From the NCBI RefSeq assembly GCF_963506605.1, contig NC_083281.1, positions 42,904,001-42,968,000 on the forward strand: a stretch of 64,000 bases of DNA, written 5' to 3'. Under the pieces are notes generated by a model. The model searched no databases and was not told where the DNA came from. It saw nothing but the letters and a program-made list of their open reading frames with translations. The stretch is from Zootoca vivipara. Taxonomy: Eukaryota. A program made the translations under genes and the position numbers. Shown piece by piece: positions 7,215 to 56,500 of the stretch. Positions within the stretch are counted from its first letter, which is position 1; every line of letters begins with the position of its first letter.

Positions 7215-7439
7215 AGTTACAGGTAGGTAGCCGTGTTGGTCTGAGTCGAAGCAAAATAAAAAAACCTAAGTTTTTATTTTGGTATGAGCTTTCGTGGGCA
7301 TGCACACTTCTTCAGATACAGTACACACTTCTTCAGATGTGTACTGTACTGTATCTGAAGCAGTGTGCATGCCCACGAAAGCTCATACCAAAATAAAAAC
7401 TTAGTTGGTCTTTAAGGTGCTACTGAAGGAATTTTTTAA
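7215..7439. mobile_element. Penelope-like element remnant (inverted pseudo-LTR) with 12-bp TSD
   Basis: About 60-bp inverted arms at 7266-7325 and 7345-7404; direct repeat TCTCATTATTCA at 7203-7214 and 7440-7451. Shares ttacaggtaggtagccgtgttggtc and gaaagctcataccaaaataaaaacttagttggtctttaaggtgctactgaagg with the copy at 48691-48876. Confidence 0.75.
7282..7319 (-). ncRNA. Minimal type I hammerhead ribozyme motif (Penelope-associated)
   Basis: Minus strand reads GUAU-CUGAAGA-A-GUGUGC AU GCCCAC-GAAA-GC-UC-AUAC: stem I GUAU/AUAC, core CUGANGA and GAAA, palindromic AGCU stem III, CUC cleavage triplet. Confidence 0.6.
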
Positions 7440-7799
7440 TCTCATTATTCAGTCTCTCAAGATAGCAACACATGTGAGGGGTTACCTTGGAGACAATAAC
7501 TGTGACACATTGGAACTTTTTTTTAAAAAAAAATGGCACAGGTCTTGTGTAAGACCACTTTATCTGAATTTCCGTATGGTTAAATTTCAGTGTTTTAATA
7601 ATCTAAGGAAGCCTGGCTTGTTTTAAGGCCACGGTAGCAAAGCGACCATTGCCAAGGATGAATCTCAACACACGCACGGAAGGACGAACGTATGCCCATT
7701 CTAATAGGGAGCAAAGTTATCTACCTTCCACGCTTCTAAGTACAACCATATAGCGCATCTGAAGCCCTTTTAGCACTTTAAGTTGAGTGTAAATGTTAA

Positions 7800-37260: not shown

Positions 37261-40200
37261 ATACCCCACCCATCTGATTGGGTGGCCCCAGCCACTCTGG
37301 GTAGCTTCCAATGTATATAAAAACCATAATAAAATATTAAACATAAAAAACTTCCCTTTTCAGGGCTGCCTTCAGATGTCTTCTAAAGTAGGGCTGCCAT
37401 ATGTCTGGGTTTTCCTGGACATGTCTGGGAATCAGACTGTCAAAATGGCATCTGAGCAACAAGGGCAATTTCTTAAAAATAAAAATGCTTTTTAAAATCC
37501 CCCCAAAGACCCAAAAACTTACTTATTTTTTGGTCAACAACTTTGTCCAGATTTTCGCTTTTGGGAATATAGCAACCCCATTCTAAAGGTTGTACAGCTC
37601 CCATTGCTCAGTCCCTGCTCCTGCCAACCTAGCAGTTCAAAAGCACATCAAAGTGCAAGTAGATAAATAGGTACCACTCCGGTGGGAAGGTAAATGGCGT
37701 TTCCGTGTGCTGCTCTGGTTCGCCAGAAGCAGCTTAGTCATGCTGGCCACATGACCTGGAAGCTTCTGCCAATAAAGCGAGATGAGCGCCGCAACCCGAG
37801 TCATCCACGACTGGACCTAAGGGTCAGGGGTCCCTTTACCTTTTACCCATACAGGAGGCCCCACAATGGGCTGTGTGTCCCAGGGAGACTCCCCTCCTGG
37901 ATTGTGACAGCAGCAAGTCTGTGATGTCAGCCCACAAACATCACAGGAATTATCCCCAGCAAGTATTGTGTACCTGTGGGCACCTGACTTACAAAGTAGA
38001 TGTGCAAGGTAACGGAACAGCCTGAATTTGTGCCTCTTATCCCACAGTCCGCTGGGAATACAGTCAATCTTCTGGCAGGTAACAAAGGCTGCTTTAAAGA
38101 GTGGTGTATCTGGTGGTCAATGTTTAGTGCAGCCTTCCTCAACCTGGTGCCTTCCAGATGCTTTGGACTACAGCTCCCATCGGCCCCAGCCAACATGGCA
38201 AAAAACAGGGGTGAGAGTGGGGTTCCAAAGTCTAGTGGCTTTTGGAGGGTTCCAGAGAGGTGACTCAGCCCTTTGCCTGAGACTTGTAGAGTGGCTGAGG
38301 TGAATCATGATGATTATTATTAGAAGAGAACTAGAACCTTCTGCAAATGCTTTTGACTTTGGAGGTCATGGCTGAGGTTTCTGAGGGACAGGGCACACAA
38401 GTCTAATGAGGCTTCTATTGAGGGGCTATATTTTGCCAAAAATAATGGGGAGCGGCATGTTGGACTCTGTTTCTTCTTGTCTGTTCAGTCTTCTAGGTGC
38501 TGTGTGTGGAGGGTTGGTGAAGTCACCTGTAAGCAATCTTGCTTGCGGAGGCTTTTCCTCTTGTGATTTGGCTGCCTTTGCTTGCTGATTTGATGGTAGC
38601 ATTTCTTATACTCCATGAAATAAGGACCCCAGCTTGATCACTGACATTAACCAGAGGAGGGCATCCCGAGCCAGTCATTTTTATGATTGTTTTGTACTGT
38701 TTTGCGGCACTTTATGGTGTGTGTGTGTGTGTTGTTGTACATTGCCTTGATATATTTTATGGGAGTAGGCAGTTTATAAATATTTTAAAGAAATAAATAT
38801 TTAACATGCTGTTTTTCCACTTTGGGGGCCTTTGGGCCAAAAAGTGTACAATTTGTAATAGTAGTCATAATCATAGATTAGAGACTGAAATAACGGATAG
38901 AATTCTACAGGATGTGGTATTAGTGTGTGAAAACAATCAAGATCCAATGATCCCCAGGCATGTACCTCCAGATGATGAAGATGTCAGGCGCCATCCTGGC
39001 TCCCTGGCATCTGCATTTATTCACAAGGGGCCAATAGTCAGGTTCAAAATGCTCCTGGCTAATTTTGAACACTGGCAATAAAGCAGCAGATCCAACTAGT
39101 TTTTTAATTAATCACCCAAATGTTGCTGTTTATAAAGATCACATTGGTTTTGTCAGGGGACATTGATTTCACCAAACAAGAAGCTGTAAAGCTAAATTAC
39201 ATGTCCAATCCATAGCAGGGGAGAGTGAGACTTGGCAACAGTAGACTTAACCAGACCCAATCAGTGAGCCTGACTTGAGCTGGGATTTGACCTCTGCTTG
39301 CTCACCCTGTTCATTTTCTTCCCTCATTGCTTGACAGCTATCTAAACCCTGGAATGAGGCAGCTCAATGGGAACCAGAAGAAAGACAGAGTGCAGGTGAG
39401 TTCCAGAGTGGGGCAAGGAAAGGCCTCAGCTGTTTGTAAGCAGCTGATGCTGCTTTAAAGGATGAGCAGTTTAAAGCGGTTTTCACACACACACACAAAA
39501 CACTTTAAAAAATATTTATTGGCACATTAGGCACTGTGGAAGCAAAAGAATAAGCTTACAGTCTGGAAAAGTTACTCTCTCCGCTTGGCCCACCCACTCC
39601 AATATAGTCCAGTCTCTGAGAAGCCAATGCAGTGAAGCTAACCTGCAAGAGGGCTCTGAACTGCTCTGTTTCCCCGTTTTTAGGCTCAGTAGAAAGCAGC
39701 TTTAAGTGATTTTAAATGTTTGGTGTTTTATTATGCTTTTATATTTGTTGGAAGCCACCCAGAATGGCTGGGGCAACCGGTCAGATGGGTGGGGGGTACT
39801 ACTACGGTACTACTAATAATAATAATAATAATGTGTGTGTTTGTACACAAATTGCAATGCCTGGTGGCTGATGCAAGTAAGTTGCATCCACTGATTTTTC
39901 TCTTAAATATAGCAACAAGACCTTGAACTATCTATCACTGTTGTGATTCTACTTAGGTTGAAAGGCAAGCAGTGGTGGGGTACAGAATGGTCCACACATT
40001 GAAGATGGTGATATGAATTATATAGGTTAACCTCTGAAGAGTAAATCTGTGGAGGAAGGTCTGAATCTTGCTAAGGCTGAGTGGAACCCCTTGAGTTAGT
40101 CCCACTCACCTTACAAGGCTAAAAATCATACAATTGTAAGAATTGGAAGGGAACCACATGGGTCATCTTGTCCAACCCCCTTTAATGCAGGAATCTTTTG

Positions 40201-48690: not shown

Positions 48691-48876
48691 TCTGGTTACA
48701 GGTAGGTAGCCGTGTTGGTCTGGGTCGAAGTAAAATAAAAAAAAATCCTTCAGTAGCACCTTAAAGACCAACTAAGTATTTATTTTGGTATGAGCTTTCG
48801 TGTGCATGCACACGAAAGCTCATACCAAAATAAAAACTTAGTTGGTCTTTAAGGTGCTACTGAAGGAATTTTTTTA
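48691..48876. mobile_element. Penelope-like remnant forming a spacer-less 122-bp palindrome
   Basis: Arms 48746-48806 and 48807-48867 with one mismatch; 12-bp TSD TTATACATTAGC at 48679-48690 and 48877-48888; same family as 7215-7439. Confidence 0.75.
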
Positions 48877-48921
48877 TTATACATTAGCATTCACCATATA
48901 CAGTACTCTCAGTACAAAACA

Positions 48922-48927
48922 TTTATT
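48922..48927 (-). terminator. Candidate polyA signal of the transposase-derived gene
   Basis: AATAAA on the minus strand about 90 nt after the ORF stop, outside the TIR. Confidence 0.45.
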
Positions 48928-48966
48928 TAGTGTCAACAGTGCACAACACCCCTCTCGGTTCCAGAC

Positions 48967-49004
48967 TAAGGTTGCCATATTTTGAAGAACAAAAAAGGGA
49001 ACAC
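48967..49004 (-). repeat. Surviving 3' terminal inverted repeat of a hAT-Blackjack-like element
   Basis: TAAGGTTGCCATATTTTGAAGAACAAAAAAGGGAACAC resembles the Blackjack-type end TAGGGTTGCCA...AAAAGGGACA and the termini of the 37389 element; it abuts the transposase stop codon region. Confidence 0.7.
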
Positions 49005-49018
49005 ATTTGCCAACTACC

Positions 49019-50965
49019 TCATGGTATGTCACTTTCAAATGCACTTTGTTCTTCTTTCTGATGTTGTCTGGCCCAAGCATATTTCTCCGTAGATCTTATC
49101 TTGTTCAACAACTGCTTATTGCTTAAGAGATAAGCATGAAATTTCTTGCAAGTAAAGTGCTTATAATTGTATTGTACTAGCAATATACTCCGCAGCGATT
49201 CCAAGGATAAGTGGCCTCTTTCTTTGCTCCACCAACTTTGCATCAAAGAGAAAATGTGTTCCATATTTGCATTATCATGTGATGCAACAGCAAAAAAAAA
49301 CTGTGCAATCTTCAAAAGTTCTGAGTGGCACATGTTTTGGGAAGTCTCAAAGTACTTGGTCCACTTCTGATGTGCCTGAAGATTAATGAACTCATCATCC
49401 CCTTTGTATTGATCCACAAACTTCTTGAGGTTGCAGAATTGATCAAAGCACTTCACATCATCTATGGATATATCCCTGTCCAGGAGAAATTTTATAGAAG
49501 GTTCTACCTTGTCCCACTCAAGTGACTCACTAAGAGACATCCACATGAAGCATGAAAACTCTTTCATGGACTCCATCCATTTTCCCAGATATTCTATGCA
49601 GTTGTCATATAAGCTATTTACTTCTGCACAGAATTTGTTACACTCCACACCAAGACCCTCCTTACGCTTTTCTTCTAGAAGACTCTTAACTTTGAGGGGC
49701 ATAAAGTTGTTGCTTTTATGTTCATTGAGCATGTTCTGAACACAAAGCAGAACTTTCAGAACCTCTACAACTGAATTATTTTCCCTTTCGAGTTCTAAAA
49801 TATATGAGTGAAACATACTCATGAGAGACTGCAAGTGCAATAAATAAACCTCACTAAATGCGTGTTCAAAAAACTTTTTTAACACTGTTGGTGGATTATT
49901 CTGTGAGAGAAAAAATGCCTTGACAGCTGGAAACACGCGAATGAGTCTATTGACGCCTGGAAATAATGACAACCACCTTGTCTTGCTATGAGATAGCAGC
50001 TTTTTGTATTCAATATCTACAAATTCACAGTACTCCTTTAACTGCTCCGTTCGGACTGCATAGATGTGAAAGTACTGGTATATCTTGAAAATGATGCTCT
50101 CAACATCGATGTTCAAAGTTTCTGCTGCCTGATGAACACAGTTATTCAAAATGTGTCCTGGACATCCCACACCAATTAACGTTTTGTTATCTAGCTCATT
50201 GTTCAACTTTGCGAACACATTTCTTCCTTCTGAATCCCATCGTATCCCTCCGAACATTGTGCTGCAGTTGTCACCTGTGAATGCTATGCATTTCTTTAGC
50301 AGTCCTTTACTTTCAAGAGTTTCCTTCACGTATGACAAGATTGTATCTGCAGACTCATTGGGTTGGCTTTGCATTTCAATGATTTTGGACTGCAAACCAC
50401 CACTTTTCCAGTCAAAATATTGAATAACTATTGGAAACACCTTTACTGAACCATGGTTACTCCCATCAGTGGAAACTCCACAATAACCTACGTTGTTTTC
50501 TTCAATGCTTTTCAAAACATTTTCCAAACAATCGGGTGCCAAGACAGAATTTACAATTGCCTCTGTCTTGGTTTTTGCACTTGAAAACCTCCTTGCAATA
50601 TCGGAATCTGGGAATGTCGTCTTCAGTAGGCCTGATGTGCATGCCATCACATTATAACTGTTGTGGTGCTTAACAGTGTGAAAAGCAAAAGTTCCTTCAG
50701 CTGCGGTTACTTCGTCTTCCAATCTGCTACATGGTTTTATGAAAAAGTCTGTTAATTGTGCTGAAGAAGCTTCTCCTCGAATTGCTTTTTTGTGTTTTTC
50801 GGACTCCACGTGTGATTGCAGGTCGCGTCCTCCTTTATTTGCCACAGAGACAAATGTACCTGGTTTACATATCATGCATTCACCTTCAAAATCATCTCTA
50901 CCTCTTCTAAAACACGTATACTTTTTCTGCAGCCCACCAGTAAATTTACATTTTCTTTTCGGCAT
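49019..50965 (-). CDS. Intact hAT-superfamily (Blackjack-like) transposase, 648 aa, single coding exon; candidate domesticated gene
   Basis: Uninterrupted ORF from ATG 50965 (ACAAAATG). N-terminal zinc finger CMIC...HVESEKH; catalytic-type motifs GVSTDGSN (D), AFTGDNC (D), CPGH (CxxH), KTRWLS (W) and NANMEHIFS (E); hAT C-terminal dimerization-like region. Confidence 0.9.
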   Translation of the reverse strand: MPKRKCKFTGGLQKKYTCFRRGRDDFEGECMICKPGTFVSVANKGGRDLQSHVESEKHKKAIRGEASSAQLTDFFIKPCSRLEDEVTAAEGTFAFHTVKHHNSYNVMACTSGLLKTTFPDSDIARRFSSAKTKTEAIVNSVLAPDCLENVLKSIEENNVGYCGVSTDGSNHGSVKVFPIVIQYFDWKSGGLQSKIIEMQSQPNESADTILSYVKETLESKGLLKKCIAFTGDNCSTMFGGIRWDSEGRNVFAKLNNELDNKTLIGVGCPGHILNNCVHQAAETLNIDVESIIFKIYQYFHIYAVRTEQLKEYCEFVDIEYKKLLSHSKTRWLSLFPGVNRLIRVFPAVKAFFLSQNNPPTVLKKFFEHAFSEVYLLHLQSLMSMFHSYILELERENNSVVEVLKVLLCVQNMLNEHKSNNFMPLKVKSLLEEKRKEGLGVECNKFCAEVNSLYDNCIEYLGKWMESMKEFSCFMWMSLSESLEWDKVEPSIKFLLDRDISIDDVKCFDQFCNLKKFVDQYKGDDEFINLQAHQKWTKYFETSQNMCHSELLKIAQFFFAVASHDNANMEHIFSLMQSWWSKERGHLSLESLRSILLVQYNYKHFTCKKFHAYLLSNKQLLNKIRSTEKYAWARQHQKEEQSAFESDIP

Positions 50966-51649
50966 TTTGTTGCCTAGAAGCACTAAATTTCAGTTTGAAC
51001 CAGAAAGCAAAAACAGCTCTTGAAAGTAGCATGCAGAACTTAAGAAGTTTATACAATTATCCATTCCTTACGGGCAAAAATTAGTCCATGGTGATATCCT
51101 GAATTTAAGGAGAAGTGGGAGAATTTCAAAAATTCACGAGGTGGGTTCTGCAGACTTCAGAAGTGTTTGAAGTGGAAAAGTGACTGAGCAGGTTATAATC
51201 CCAATTCCCTTTTTAGTCAACGTTTTCCCTTTCAACAGAAGGAGACTCTGCAGGTCAACATCCAGCTACCTTTTCCCCCACAAGCTGAGGCAACAGGTTG
51301 CAAAATATCCAGGCCTCATGTTCAGAATCCAGATCACCTAGAAGGCCAGGCTGTGAAGAAGAGACAAGACACATTGCAATCAATGTTCCTTTCTCCAGAC
51401 GTTTCAGAAATCTGCAACATTACTAATCTGCTCTCGGAAGAATAATGAACACCATGTACGTACTTGGGAACAAGGAAACCTTAAAGTAAGAACATGCAAC
51501 GAAATCCATGCCGATTGCAAAAAGGGAGGGGAGAATGTCTTACTGCAGGGTGAAACGGCGATACAGTACTATCATGGGAGGCAGGCGCGAAGAAAACCGG
51601 AGGAATTAAAACTGCCACCAAGCACGCTCCTTGGCCCAACGAACTAGCC

Positions 51650-52620
51650 GAAGAGAAGACAGTCCTCGGTGAAAGGAGGAGTTGCAGTTGCAACCCCAAG
51701 GCATAAGAGTTACTCGGAGAAAGTCCCCATTACGCACCGTGTGGCTTACTTCCGAGTAAACACGCAACAGGACGGCGCTGCAAACCACCAGATGTGGCAA
51801 GCTCGGATCCGGGACCCGAGGAAAGCAAGAGGGGGCGGGAGGAGGAAAAGCGCCCGCGGATCTCAGCGCCTAACCTGCGAGAGTGCGCGCGTTTCCTGCC
51901 CTCCTCCTCCCCTCCCATTTCATAGCCAGGTAAAGTCGGGTACGACTCCCCCCCCCCGCCCCCCGCTGCAGGTTGCGCTGCAGGTTGCCCTATCTATTCT
52001 CCTTCCCTCCCTCTCAATCCGCCTCCAACTGCCGCCCCTCGACCAAGCCGGGCCCCAACGGAACTTGAGTCGCATTATTTTTTTCCTCTTGGAAGAAGGG
52101 AGCCGGGGGAAGGACGGAGAAGCAACATACTAGAGGCAGGGGGTGAAAGACCGAACTATGGGAGCCTCAGAGCCTGGCATCCTCCCTCTTCTCCCCCGGT
52201 GAAGCGCCCCGCCCCCCACACGCAAACCTCCCTCCACACCGCCTCCTCTTCCCTCAGGCCTGTCGGCGGTGTGGAGGGAGAAGGAGGAAGCGTTGTCGCC
52301 GCCGCGGCTCTCACCTGCCAGCCAAGTTCCGGCAAATCACAGCAGCTCCAGCCGGAATCCCGGATTTTGAAGCTCCTCTTTGCCGCCGTCTCTCCCCCGC
52401 CGCGCCCACAACACCTCGCTTCTGTCAGCCAGCCAGCCTGTTCCAAAATGGCGCGGCTCAGAGGCGCATCCGCGATGCCTTGCGAACAAGCCTCGCGAGA
52501 GTTCGCTGCCATGAGCTGCAGGCGAGACTTGGCTTGAGAGTGGGGCAGGTGGGCTGGAAGAGGGACTGCGCGCGCGCCTGACGTTCTACGACACATTGTA
52601 CATGTGCGAGGGTGGGGGAG
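51650..52620 (-). promoter_or_regulatory. CpG-island promoter with candidate non-coding exon 1 (about 52460..52315, donor CAG|GTGAGA) pointing at the transposase ORF
   Basis: CpG-dense. YY1 motif CGCCATTTTG on the minus strand at 52444-52453, BANP/ZBTB33-like CCTCGCGAGA at 52491-52500, GC-rich NRF1-like run near 52567, strong minus-strand donor at 52315/52314. Confidence 0.75.
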
Positions 52621-52934
52621 ATTATATTACATTAAATATATGATCATATCATACCGGTATATCAACCTGCATCTTTCCGTTATAACGGATTAGAGTATAG
52701 GGTGAGCGCTAAAATAAGGGGCAGTTATTTGGAGAAGCAGCGGACTAAAAATGCAGTGAACTATATTATAGGCGCTTGCTGAGAAACCCTCGACCGATGG
52801 AAGTTTTGACTTCCTGTTTCCTTCAGGGGGTTGAAGGGAGTTTCCAAACCTGCCTCTTTTTTTTTTTGGCAGTTTGCATATCATGGTACCCTCCTAAAGA
52901 ATAGATGTCACTTGATACGTGGTATGTTCTATGG

Positions 52935-53198
52935 CAGTGTTTCTCAACCTTTTTTGGGCCACGGCACACTTGTTCCGTGAAAAAAATCACGAGGCACACC
53001 ACCATTAAAAAAGTTAAAAAATTTAACTCTGTGCCGCCCTATATTATAATTATGACTGTTCTCACTTGCCAAATATTGCTTTCTGGCGGGTCAGTGGTGC
53101 GTATTAGCGGCCGCCAGGCACGTGACAATGCAAATCGCCCTTCTCGTCGCTGTATGTCGCGGCACACCATGCCGCGGAACAGTGGTTGAGAAACGCTG
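52935..53198. mobile_element. hAT (Charlie-like) MITE
   Basis: TIRs CAGTGTTTCTCAACC / GGTTGAGAAACGCTG; 8-bp TSD TTCTATGG at 52927-52934 and 53199-53206. Confidence 0.9.
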
Positions 53199-53412
53199 TT
53201 CTATGGCAGGTGCCTTTGTTTGTCCGGCTCGTAACCCTAAAGGGACTCAAGGAGGCTGGTGAGTAGAGAGAGAATGTTTAACACTGTTTGGGGTCTCATC
53301 AACCACACCTGTAGGGATCAAGACATTTGCCCCCTTTCAAGGGAACGGAAAGAAATTCACTTAGCCAGGACCTTTAGGCTCTTAGCTCTGGCACAACCGG
53401 AACCTCTTAGAC

Positions 53413-53547
53413 CAGGCTTCCTCAACCTCAGCCCTCCAGATTATTTGGCCTACAACTCCCATGATCTCTAGCTAGCAGGACCAGTGGTCAGGGATAATGG
53501 GAATTGTAGTCTCAAAACATCTGGAGGGCCGAGGCTGAGGAAGCCTG
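53413..53547. mobile_element. hAT MITE (URR1-like hairpin family)
   Basis: TIRs CAGGCTTCCTCA / TGAGGAAGCCTG; 8-bp TSD TCTTAGAC at 53405-53412 and 53548-53555. Confidence 0.9.
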
Positions 53548-56500
53548 TCTTAGACTCTTGCAGACATACATTTTATTTGTGGGGCCCTCCTTTCTATTCC
53601 CCCACCCAAATTGAATTGGGTAGGTCAGGTTTTGCTTTCAACAGTAATTGCCAGCTAAACGATGTTTGTTTTGGTGGGGTGGTCATAAGCCTCATTAACT
53701 TCCCCCTTACACCAAAGAATATAAGGAAAATGATATTAAGCCTCACTTAAACCCAGGATAAGGAACACCTTTTAGCATTCATTGCCGACCTTTAGAAGTA
53801 TCCACATCATGAGAACTTCTTTAGCCTAAGTTTTGAGCTAATACTATTTAAGTGGGATCCTCCCCCCCCCCTTTTGGGGGGCGTTCTATAACTTAGGTTT
53901 GTAAACCCTTCCTGAGTTTTACAATGAATTATTATTAATTTAGTTTTTTGAAACCTCTTCTCAATTTTCCTTCGAGGAACTGATTCCTCTAGCCGGCAAC
54001 CTGTCAGGTTTATTTCATTTCATTTCAGAAAATCCCTATTTAGGTTTATGACTAGGGTATTTTCCCTTTTCAAAGAATTCTTATTTAGGTTTATTATGTA
54101 TAGTTTCACGTCAGGCACTTTTAAGTTAGGTTAAGTTTGTTTCACTCTTTTCATATAGAATTAGGTACCGGTATTAGAATGACTCGTTCTAGAGTTTTTC
54201 ATGGCTTTTACTCTTTTTTTGTTTTTGAAAAAATGTGAGGCAGGATAGGTAGGACGCAGAAAGATTTCAGGGTGACTGGAGACCCTGGCCTTGGAGATGC
54301 TGTGTGCTTGAAATCCCAACACAGTTGATGTGGATACAAAAAACAGATGTCACATTCCTAACTTTCAACAGATGGGAACAGGGAAGACCCTGAGCTGGCA
54401 CAGGCTCTCTTTGGGGCATCGGGACCCAGAAGCCTCGCCTTTCCCCCCACTCCCTAGATGCAGGATGGCTTCCTTCCCCCAACACCCTTTCTCATCCCCT
54501 CATCCACTGCATTCCAGGCAACTTCCTGCCCGCGCCCCCCCCCCCCCACAGTAAAACATCTGGCTCCAATTAGAGCAGCAGTAGGAGGAGAGAACAGGCT
54601 ATTTTTATCAAGCCAAACCAGGGAGGAGTGGTATAAAGAGCAAAAGGAGCAGGGAGGAAGGGGTATGTGCCTTGAGCCCTTTTTGTCCAAGGACCAATGA
54701 CCCCAAAAGCCCTACCAGATGCTGTCGGGGGTGGGGTTTGTTTTCTTGGATGGAAGAATTGGTTGCTTTCCCTAATTGCAAAATAAACTCTTTAAGCATC
54801 TGATTTTCAGCTGTGCTTGTCCCTGCTCCGCACTGCCCATTCCCAGCCCAGACATATTTACTCTGCTCTCACTCTCCACCCCTCCCACATCACCAGTGCT
54901 GTGTCTCTGGGGGAAAGCATGCAGCTACTGGACAGAGGCTGTGACCCTGGGAAGCCAACCCCAAACTGACCCCCCCCCCCGCCCTTCCCACCAGCCTGTT
55001 ACTGCTTTCCAAGATTCAGTCAAGGGACAGGCAGGGGTGGGGTGGGGAGGAGGTTTGTGGGAACCAAGCAGACGGCTCACAAAAAAGGAGGGTCAGTAAG
55101 AGCCTTCAAGTAGCATGGGTACAAAAAGCTTTTCTTCCAACAATACAGGGAAGGTCTGGTGCAGAGGAGAACCAGCCTTTTTCAGGAAAAGACTAGACAT
55201 ACTTCATGTTGGTGGATCTGTGTGTGTGTGGATGGGGACAGAGAGAAAGTTAAAGGAAGTTATACTACCAAAATATGCTTGGAACATGGCCAAGAGTCTC
55301 TCAGACTCCTCCGCCCTCTCAAACCTCCCATCTGGCTCTTTCCTGTACATTAGGGGGCTTAGAGGGAGAGGCATTGGCAAAGCATCTCGACCAAAGGAGG
55401 TTCCACCAAGGGCAGAGGAAAGCTAGCCTTCCTGACTGCTTCCCCCATTTTCCTTGTTACCCAGATAAAATTAGGCAGAGGACCAGAGGTGAGACCAAGA
55501 CCACAAGGCACGTTGTGGAAAACTGGAATGAAGTTTATGAAAGATAAGGCACATTTTTACACAAAAGTTTACCGGCCTGTTATAAACCAAGGTTGTCCTG
55601 TATGCAACATGGGTCTGTGCAAAGTTGAAAGAGTCCCCCTCTGGGGTACATGGGCACCAGGCACAAAGCCCCACAGGACCAGTGGGAGGGTTGCTAACCT
55701 CCCCCCTTTTTCCATCTGGGGAAAGAGCCATAAAGGCCACTGGACAAGGCTGCTGCTTGATAATACTTGGCCAAATCACACCCTGTTTGTGGGATGAGAG
55801 GAGTCAGGCAGCAAAGGAAGGGCTGGGGTCATCCCCAAGCTGCCTCCTTGCAGGATGCGCCCCAGTTGTGCATCAACCTGGCAGAAGGTGGGATGAGATG
55901 AAGTGCTGCACCCTGAGAATTCACTGGGAGTTTCCTGGTAGTGTGGAAAAATACCGTAGATGGCACTTACCTGTTCCCTATGCAACTCCTTGAAATAATA
56001 AGCACCATTTGGGAGGGGTAGGAGAAAAACAGGCTTCCAACACAGCCAGGAAAAAAGGGAGATACAGAACTTTGTCACGGTTGATCTGCCTCCCTTGGTA
56101 TGTGGTTGTGTGTAAGCACAGGTGGGTTTAAGGTCCTTGCAGTCTATTGCCTCCAACCCATCCCTTTAGAGGTACCTGGACAGGTGCAACAAGACCTGCC
56201 GCCACAATCCTCCCCAAGAGCACCATATTCATTTTTTTGCCTACTAAATCAGTTAAGCACAATGCAAGCCAGAGTCCTGCATGCAAGTCTGCTTCTGTTC
56301 AGGCTGGTGAACTGCAACCCCCGTACCTTTCTGTTACTGCAGTGGGCACTGCTACACCACTTTCCATGTTCCCTACACATGTCCATTGTGAAAATCAGGA
56401 ATAGTCCTCCCACGTAAACAGAGGAACTGGCATTAGTTCTGTGTGCTGCTCCTTTACTTTGCCTGCACTGCCTTCCCTCTCTAGTTCCCAGGAGGAAAAG

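Follow-up and report, generated by a model that had tools for sequence, protein, structure and literature searches.

A stretch of 64,000 nucleotides from Zootoca vivipara (contig NC_083281.1, positions 42,904,001 to 42,968,000; hereafter the window) contains a minus-strand gene, termed c1 below, that codes for a protein of 648 amino acids (aa) modelled as a hAT transposase. We favor the explanation, with a probability of about 0.8, that an autonomous hAT element inserted beside a CpG-island promoter, lost its usable 5′ end, and was fixed as a host gene in lacertine lizards. An earlier note on this DNA had already proposed an immobilized, host-expressed transposase-derived gene. This proposal is supported by intact orthologues in at least four lacertids, by an excess of synonymous differences, by the avoidance of conserved positions, by the degenerate 5′ end of the element, and by RNA joints at the splice donor 52315.

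According to this scenario, an element of ~2.4–2.5 kb would have integrated just downstream of the CpG-island promoter in an ancestor of the lacertine lizards, and would have been fixed as c1 with loss of its usable 5′ end. Transcription would start in the island near a CGCG and a YY1 motif, at about 52465–52500. The donor of a first exon at 52315 would be spliced to 51350, in or at the edge of the 5′ subterminal region of the transposon. A single terminal exon of 2.5 kb would then carry a leader rich in upstream open reading frames (uORFs), the full transposase open reading frame (ORF), and the old 3′ terminal inverted repeat (TIR), the latter as part of the 3′ untranslated region (UTR). The protein itself would retain a CCHH zinc finger, a Hermes-like RNase H core with a helical insertion, the DDE (Asp-Asp-Glu) triad, and the C-terminal dimerization helices.

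Transposase, transcript, and element ends

The ORF (50965–49022, minus strand) is the sole ORF of at least 200 aa in the window. It is uninterrupted from its ATG, as the earlier note had reported, and no further copy or fragment of it was found within the 64 kb. The encoded protein is identical to a database protein on a 97-Mb record (P0122; NCBI, UniRef). The gene is therefore annotated already, as an uncharacterized LOC.

Since Pfam gave nothing above threshold on this protein, its identity was drawn from relatives, from a profile search of the PDB, and from its fold. The only sub-threshold Pfam match was zf-DBF (14.6 bits versus a cut-off of 24.8). The BED-type zinc finger PF02892, a trait of the ZBED family, was not matched by Pfam, though a CCHH finger is present. 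A database search returned hundreds of full-length relatives from fishes, snakes, lizards, a caecilian, turtles, and insects, several of which match the hAT dimerization domain PF05699 (for example, P0085 at 26.5 bits). A profile made from 19 family members matches Hermes, with the C-terminal dimerization region aligned (E 4e-4). The family block NANVERIFS aligns with Hermes SAASERTFS, which marks the catalytic Glu, and the family CxxH with Hermes CSSH. An AlphaFold model of the protein has a mean predicted local distance difference test score (pLDDT) of 79.7, and its ten best PDB matches in Foldseek are all Hermes chains (E 2e-8 to 2e-7, template modelling (TM) score up to 0.70). As judged from the predicted fold, the ORF product is a hAT transposase with a Hermes-like RNase H DDE core and an all-helical insertion. 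The residues kept in the protein include C30, C33, H52, and H58 of the finger, the catalytic D167, D232, and E569, the pair C268/H271, and R330-W331.

RNA data comprised a raw stranded run (X21, reads kept at a 90% threshold) labelled as organism A, the species of the window, and three Logan contig sets that we guessed to be RNA: X13 from organism A, X17 from organism B, and X19 from organism C, the latter two organisms being related species. Nearly all first mates of X21 lie on the plus strand, which in a usual stranded library corresponds to RNA from the minus strand. Depth in this run is unbroken from 48876 to about 51350 and zero over 51466–52205. Contigs of both X17 and X19 join 51350 to 52315. 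The skipped 964 nt are bounded by CT..AC on the plus strand, equivalent to GT..AG on the minus strand. In X19, a contig of 640 nt spans 52463–52315 joined to 51350–50859. Its depth (18.2) is like that of c1-type coding contigs (15–16) and unlike that of a paralogue (34–53) in the same run. Transcripts of organisms B and C thus carry an exon 1 homologous to the CpG island of the window. The terminal exon of 2.5 kb opens at acceptor 51350 (gtcttgtctcttcttcacag/CC), and X13 covers 48876–49835 (plus 34 nt past it) and 50805–51308 within this exon. In the frame of the ORF, neither exon 1 nor the leader is open, and a stop lies seven codons before the ATG.

These joints can be compared with the splice sites suggested earlier. 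The CpG island, the YY1- and BANP-like motifs, and the donor CAG/GTGAGA at 52315 were all found as described, and the donor is joined in RNA to 51350 and to 50832. An acceptor had been proposed at 50973. The motif cttctag/GC is present there, but splicing at this site was seen in none of the reads or contigs, and the contigs X13 50805–51308 and X19 50859–51350 traverse it. Of the sites suggested for checking, 52315 and 51350 are in use and the acceptor 50973 is not. The 5′ UTR contains one intron, not two. The splice from 52315 to 50832 falls inside the coding sequence (CDS) and deletes codons 1–44, so that the start codon and the cysteines of the zinc finger are lost. The CpG island would be of host origin and would serve as the main promoter.

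At the other end of the gene, the AATAAA that had been noticed beyond the TIR is present at 48927–48922, but transcripts read through it to at least 48842, and a second AATAAA at 48878–48873 fits better as the poly(A) signal. Directly past the 3′ end lies a palindrome (48738–48875) with 72-nt arms that are 97% complementary. Transcripts enter it, and a related copy is found 41 kb away at 7221–7440.

The X21 reads from organism A are not uniform. Over 51068–51242, they mostly carry organism B/C alleles and differ in 5–10 further places per read. X21 reads from the CDS hardly differ from the window, and the leader in the X13 contig is also of the window type. The odd leader reads could stem from a haplotype that has diverged, from another copy, or from mixed labelling. 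Exon 1 reads of such a divergent haplotype may have fallen below the 90% threshold.

Comparison with complete relatives located the 3′ end of the element. At its 3′ end, the window copy reads TAAGGTTGCCATATTTTGAAGAAC... from 48967, with TAAGGTTGCCATA as the start of its TIR. This end aligns with the 3′ termini of seven complete relatives (TAGGGYTACCATA; shuffle P ≤ 0.001). Judged by this alignment, the 3′ TIR of the earlier note is genuine, with its boundary exactly at 48967. The same note had recognized neither a 5′ TIR nor a partner for the flanking 8-mer, and our searches bear this out. Besides the 3′ copy, the window holds no second copy of the 3′-TIR 21-mer with up to three mismatches, and an inverted-repeat search around the gene gave nothing meaningful that spans the ORF. 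A weak candidate at 51483–51460 sits 518 nt from the ATG, which is the expected distance. When anchored and compared with the 5′ ends of the family, it gave no significant match (P 0.01–0.9), and the sequence flanking it (TCTTACTT) does not pair with the 8-mer TTCCAGAC as a duplication. A second weak TIR-like stretch at 51422–51403 is likewise without a TTCCAGAC partner. The sequence GTCTGGAG at 51400–51393 matches the flanking 8-mer in 7/8 positions but was rejected as duplication partner, because a duplication would have to lie on the other side of the TIR-like sequence at 51422 and because GTCTGG recurs as a subterminal motif in a miniature inverted-repeat transposable element (MITE) of the family. 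The transposon-derived part seems, from these comparisons, to end at about 51420–51490, outside the CpG island and upstream of acceptor 51350.

The complete relatives L001, L003, L004, and L012 come from metagenome contigs (environmental or gut assemblies) and share 56–64% protein identity with the window protein; these contigs probably represent animal DNA in the samples. L001 is 2711 bp long, carries 13-nt TIRs (TAGGGCTACCATA), and is flanked by a perfect 8-bp duplication (GGTACATA). L003 and L012 measure 2.76–2.78 kb, and family elements range from 2.4 to 2.8 kb overall. In L001, L003, and L012, the ATG follows the 5′ end by 540–605 nt, and for active family elements such as L001 and L004 the 5′ region ahead of the ATG measures about 520–600 nt. 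A TIR start of the form YARNG together with an 8-bp duplication occurs in L001 (TAGGG..., GGTACATA) and in a 192-bp MITE of the window. In the c1 copy, the 3′ TIR (TAAGG...) fits this form, the 5′ TIR is weak, and the duplication was not found.

Orthologues, sister genes, and selection

Lacertid proteins were grouped by 90% clusters. Group c1 (648 aa) contains the window protein and its counterparts in Podarcis raffonei (LOC128418927), P. lilfordi (CAI5781830), and P. muralis (LOC114601727), on chromosomes of 85–97 Mb. Group c2 (643–656 aa; P0002, P0125–P0128) contains proteins from Lacerta agilis (LOC117038958), Z. vivipara (LOC118076111), P. muralis (LOC114586650), P. raffonei (LOC128403691), and P. 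lilfordi (CAI5798373), on chromosomes of 40–43 Mb. Group c3 (625–681 aa; P0003, P0130–P0133) is encoded on the same chromosome as c2 and is represented in P. muralis (LOC114586556), P. raffonei (LOC128403661), and P. lilfordi (CAI5798191 and CAI5798192). Each of these three groups has one member per species, on chromosomes of similar size. A fourth group, c4 (P0004, P0134–P0146), is 78% identical to the window protein and derives from Logan/ENA contigs of at most 3.7 kb. Its proteins have up to 663 aa, mostly 648, with shorter partials. All three paralogues bear the erroneous name 'golgin subfamily A member 6C' in the P. lilfordi records P0121, P0128, P0130, and P0131.

The c1 proteins of the four species align without gaps over 648 aa. 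Compared to the window protein, 31 residues differ in P. raffonei, 27 in P. lilfordi, and 26 in P. muralis; among Podarcis, the differences number 8–12. In a quick maximum-likelihood tree, the lacertid proteins form a clade (c4,(c1,(c2,c3))) with 100% support, and each group follows the species. The nearest sequences outside this clade are fish-type and other copies, not those from snakes, skinks, or iguanians. It follows that the family was acquired, or kept, only in the lacertid lineage. As far as seen in these sequences, the gene appears to be restricted to lacertids and not to be an old squamate-wide gene. The earlier idea of a possibly squamate-specific and uncharacterized gene holds with respect to its lack of characterization, but the gene was seen only in lacertids and is already annotated.

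The sister groups differ in their catalytic residues. In c2, the catalytic Glu is replaced by Gly next to a deletion of five residues (5/5 species), and in c3 the first catalytic Asp is replaced by Gly (3/3 species). Both c2 and c3 are predicted to be catalytically dead, yet they maintain long ORFs. Beside E569, c1 alone shows a set of derived traits (a one-residue insertion, ER>EH, and Q>W), and a block of 38 aa is identical in 4/4 species. Group c4 has a normal catalytic block and is represented by at least 136 short Logan/ENA contigs with several one-residue variants. This group may represent an active element, or else an orthologue expressed in a more distantly related lizard. The P. muralis isoform X1 of c3 contains an N-terminal extension that matches the window only in the seven codons before the ATG and not in exon 1. 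This paralogue is therefore without a shared exon 1 at the protein level.

With a catalytic residue missing from both c2 and c3, the family in general seems able to do without catalysis, although c1 may still possess it. The c1 protein would act as a sequence-specific, dimerizing DNA-binding factor, perhaps on relics of the transposon family from which it came.

Selection on c1 was estimated from the 27 CDS differences among the best-supported 40 of 334, a rough count in which orthologue and paralogue differences are mixed. These 27 divide into 12 non-synonymous and 15 synonymous changes, compared to a neutral expectation of 70–79% non-synonymous (omega, the ratio of non-synonymous to synonymous change, ~0.3; P = 0.005). 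Without seven differences that are found only in c2, the non-synonymous to synonymous ratio (N:S) is 8:12 (P = 0.005), and a comparison of the window with X13 gives 5:8 (P = 0.018). Three indels occur in 494 nt of leader (X19 contig) versus none in the 1944-nt CDS of the four orthologues. The 37 variable positions of c1 sit in less conserved columns of the family alignment (mean conservation 0.46 versus 0.58 for random positions, P = 0.002). For c2 this test is at the margin of significance (P = 0.05), and for c3 it shows no effect (P = 0.64). Taken together, the N:S counts, the indels, and the placement of variable sites point to moderate purifying selection acting on c1 since the species diverged, with an omega of apparently ~0.3.

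Alternative readings and comparable systems

Several observations weigh against domestication as outlined above. With the window protein itself as query, Pfam reported no hAT domain, including PF05699 even at E ≤ 1. The leader contains five upstream ATGs. The orthologues are presumed to be syntenic, which we count as a weakness; the homologous exon 1 in transcripts of organisms B and C and the similar sizes of the chromosomes support synteny only indirectly. The value of omega rests on the 27 listed differences with their mixture of orthologue and paralogue changes, and the organism B contigs, on the assumption that B shares the common Podarcis residues, give an N:S of 13:10 that is not significant (P = 0.12). 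Finally, the joint 52315>51350 is absent from the organism A data (X21, X13), in which only 52315>50832 was found. In X21, the depth over exon 1 is 0.3–0.4, about 30-fold lower than in exon 2 (~10–13 over 50911–51280 in the leader). A promoter inside the 5′ region of the transposon could supply most transcripts in the species of the window.

The depth profile and the lone organism A joint are what one would expect if the gene were domesticated with most of its transcripts starting in the transposon 5′ region (~51350–51480), and with exon 1 as a minor or alternative start spliced mostly to 50832, which destroys the ORF. Autonomous hAT elements are known to carry their own promoter in this region. 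On the other hand, the contigs of organisms B and C that connect exon 1 to 51350 are as deep as the CDS contigs. Many X21 leader reads differ at 5–10 places, and exon 1 reads with similar divergence may fail the 90% threshold. GC-rich 5′ exons are under-sampled, and the drop in depth coincides with acceptor 51350. We therefore consider this explanation unlikely, though it is the most serious of the alternatives.

Another version of a host function would have c1 as a stationary but catalytically competent transposase that is maintained by selection and works together with the dead c2 and c3, both of which keep the finger and the dimerization region. In this case, c1 could mobilize or cut at non-autonomous hAT relics of the family, with c2 and c3 as dimer partners or inhibitors. 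If true, the three genes would form a lineage-specific recombinase-regulator system from one transposon family. We regard this version as quite unlikely.

The intact DDE triad and zinc finger would also suit a recently active element, and a family-type MITE of 192 bp with a perfect duplication indicates that the family was active in this lineage. One could thus imagine c1 as a fixed, functionless young copy that is transcribed accidentally from the neighboring promoter without selection at the level of the host. The N:S of 13:10, which is not significantly below neutral, would fit this description. However, four species with ~4% synonymous or UTR divergence all contain the gap-free ORF of 648 codons. 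The leader has accumulated 3 indels per 494 nt, whereas the coding differences (12:15, P = 0.005) and the avoidance of conserved columns point to constraint. In addition, each group has one copy per species, and the 5′ end has decayed. A functionless copy is therefore improbable. That c1 is a still mobile autonomous hAT merely beside a CpG island is scarcely credible despite its intact ORF and catalytic residues and its well-preserved 3′ TIR, given that a usable 5′ TIR and a target-site duplication were not found, that the window holds no second copy, that database proteins occur as one per species and group without near-identical swarms, and that the upstream exon is common to transcripts of other species.

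The preferred reading, a domesticated element behind a captured promoter, can be compared with several known systems. Active elements of the same family (L001, L004) resemble the window copy in full-length protein identity (56–64%), in the TIR core (TAGGGYTRCCATA versus TAAGGTTGCCATA), and in the 3′ subterminal sequence. In contrast to these elements, which have both TIRs (and in L001 a perfect duplication), the window copy shows neither a convincing 5′ TIR nor a duplication, its transcripts include an outside exon, and it would hold one place across species. Hermes from Musca domestica (PDB 2bw3, 4d1q, 6dww) has the same fold (E about 2e-8, TM up to 0.70), and the CxxH and the Glu block align. 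Sequence identity between the two proteins is 13–16%, and Hermes is an active transposase with known termini.

The ZBED genes are vertebrate domesticated hAT genes (PMC3606216). Like c1, the ZBED family, FAM200A/B, GTF2IRD2, and ZBED9/SCAND3 have a transposase ORF as a single coding exon and are conserved between species, and they stand under a host promoter, as c1 probably does. Unlike these genes, c1 contains no zf-BED domain by Pfam, is found only in lacertids as far as seen, and keeps the full DDE triad. Some relatives have been auto-named 'FAM200B-like' or 'SCAN domain-containing protein 3-like', and there are no mammalian proteins among the best 120 database matches. Blackjack is listed as an autonomous human hAT family (PMC5753468). 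Capture of transposases by splicing uses acceptors that pre-exist in the transposon (Cosby et al., bioRxiv 10.1101/2020.05.07.082677). In the case of c1, an upstream exon, presumably of the host, is likewise spliced to a transposon acceptor. In contrast to those fusions, the captured exon is non-coding, the frame before the ATG is closed, and no host domain is fused. The literature searched contained no published description of this lacertid hAT-derived family.

Domestication of hAT elements in vertebrates is well documented, but the cases described so far are mostly old, and the steps of their birth have been erased. The present case is a good, not unprecedented example of transposase domestication and one of three sister genes. 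Here, the steps are still legible in the 3′ TIR within the 3′ UTR, in the decaying 5′ end, and in the non-coding CpG-island exon that is spliced to an acceptor at the 5′ edge of the transposon. The sister genes are in distinct states, with the DDE triad kept, the Glu lost, or the first Asp lost. Since many lacertid species have been sequenced, insertion, promoter capture, loss of termini and of catalysis, and duplication or repeated capture could be placed in time along the individual branches. What catalysis contributes in a transposase so recently domesticated could likewise be tested. A practical aspect is that one public annotation carries the wrong golgin names.

Feature coordinates and other elements of the window

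Table 1. Features of the c1 gene and of the element from which it derives (positions in the window).
Feature	Position	Strand	Basis or remark
CpG island	51601..52600	.	GC 0.61, CpG observed/expected 0.79 (window 0.28), 74 CpGs
CTCGCGAG, palindromic BANP-type CGCG element	52492..52499	-	sequence reading
GCCATTTT, YY1-type motif just inside exon 1	52445..52452	-	sequence reading
Non-coding exon 1	52315..52465	-	3′ boundary exact (donor CAG/GTGAGA); 5′ approximate, longest contig reaches 52463
Intron, 964 nt, GT..AG	51351..52314	-	joints in X17 and X19
Exon 2, terminal: 385-nt leader, whole CDS, 3′ UTR	48842..51350	-	continuous RNA depth; 3′ end approximate
5′ leader within exon 2	50966..51350	-	5 upstream ATGs opening short uORFs
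Alternative acceptor within CDS (aaataaag/GA)	50832..50834	-	joint 50831/2 to 52314/5 in X13 contig (depth 6.4) and one X21 read
CDS, 648 aa, hAT transposase-derived (predicted)	49022..50965	-	stop 49019-49021; protein identical to P0122
N-terminal CCHH zinc finger (C30, C33, H52, H58)	50792..50878	-	columns (near-)invariant across family
Codon D167, first catalytic Asp (STDGSNHG)	50465..50467	-	Gly in paralogue group c3
Codon D232, second catalytic Asp (TGDNC)	50270..50272	-	family motif
Codon E569, catalytic Glu, inside c1-specific altered block DNANMEHIFSLMQSWW	49259..49261	-	aligns with Hermes SERTFS Glu
Weak degenerate 5′ TIR candidate (TAAGGTTTCCTTGTTCCCAAGTAC)	51460..51483	-	17/24 identical to 3′ TIR, first 7 nt identical
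3′ TIR and subterminal region (TAAGGTTGCCATATTTTGAAGAAC...)	48967..49004	+	matches L001, L003, L006, L011, L012, L014, L018
Flanking 8-mer TTCCAGAC, half target-site duplication	48959..48966	+	sequence reading; partner not found
First AATAAA	48922..48927	-	transcripts read through
Second AATAAA, likelier poly(A) signal	48873..48878	-	reads cover 48884; X13 contig to ~48842

The MITE of 192 bp mentioned above occupies 37389–37580. It is bounded by family-type TIRs (TAGGGCTGCCATA and TGGGGTTGCTATA), its 8-bp target-site duplication (TTCTAAAG) is perfect, and at the 5′ end it resembles the complete elements L001 and L003. A DNA alignment of this MITE with the c1 copy, aimed at the 5′ boundary of the latter, gave no similarity above chance beyond the TIR. 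Upstream of the CpG island, a repeat at 53316–53685 is present in very high copy. RNA contigs over this repeat reach a depth of ~1e5, and reads fall on both strands, with many joints between opposite strands and hundreds of loose ends, so that it looks like an abundant inverted-repeat element. The adjoining region 52761–53315 is also repeat-like on both strands.

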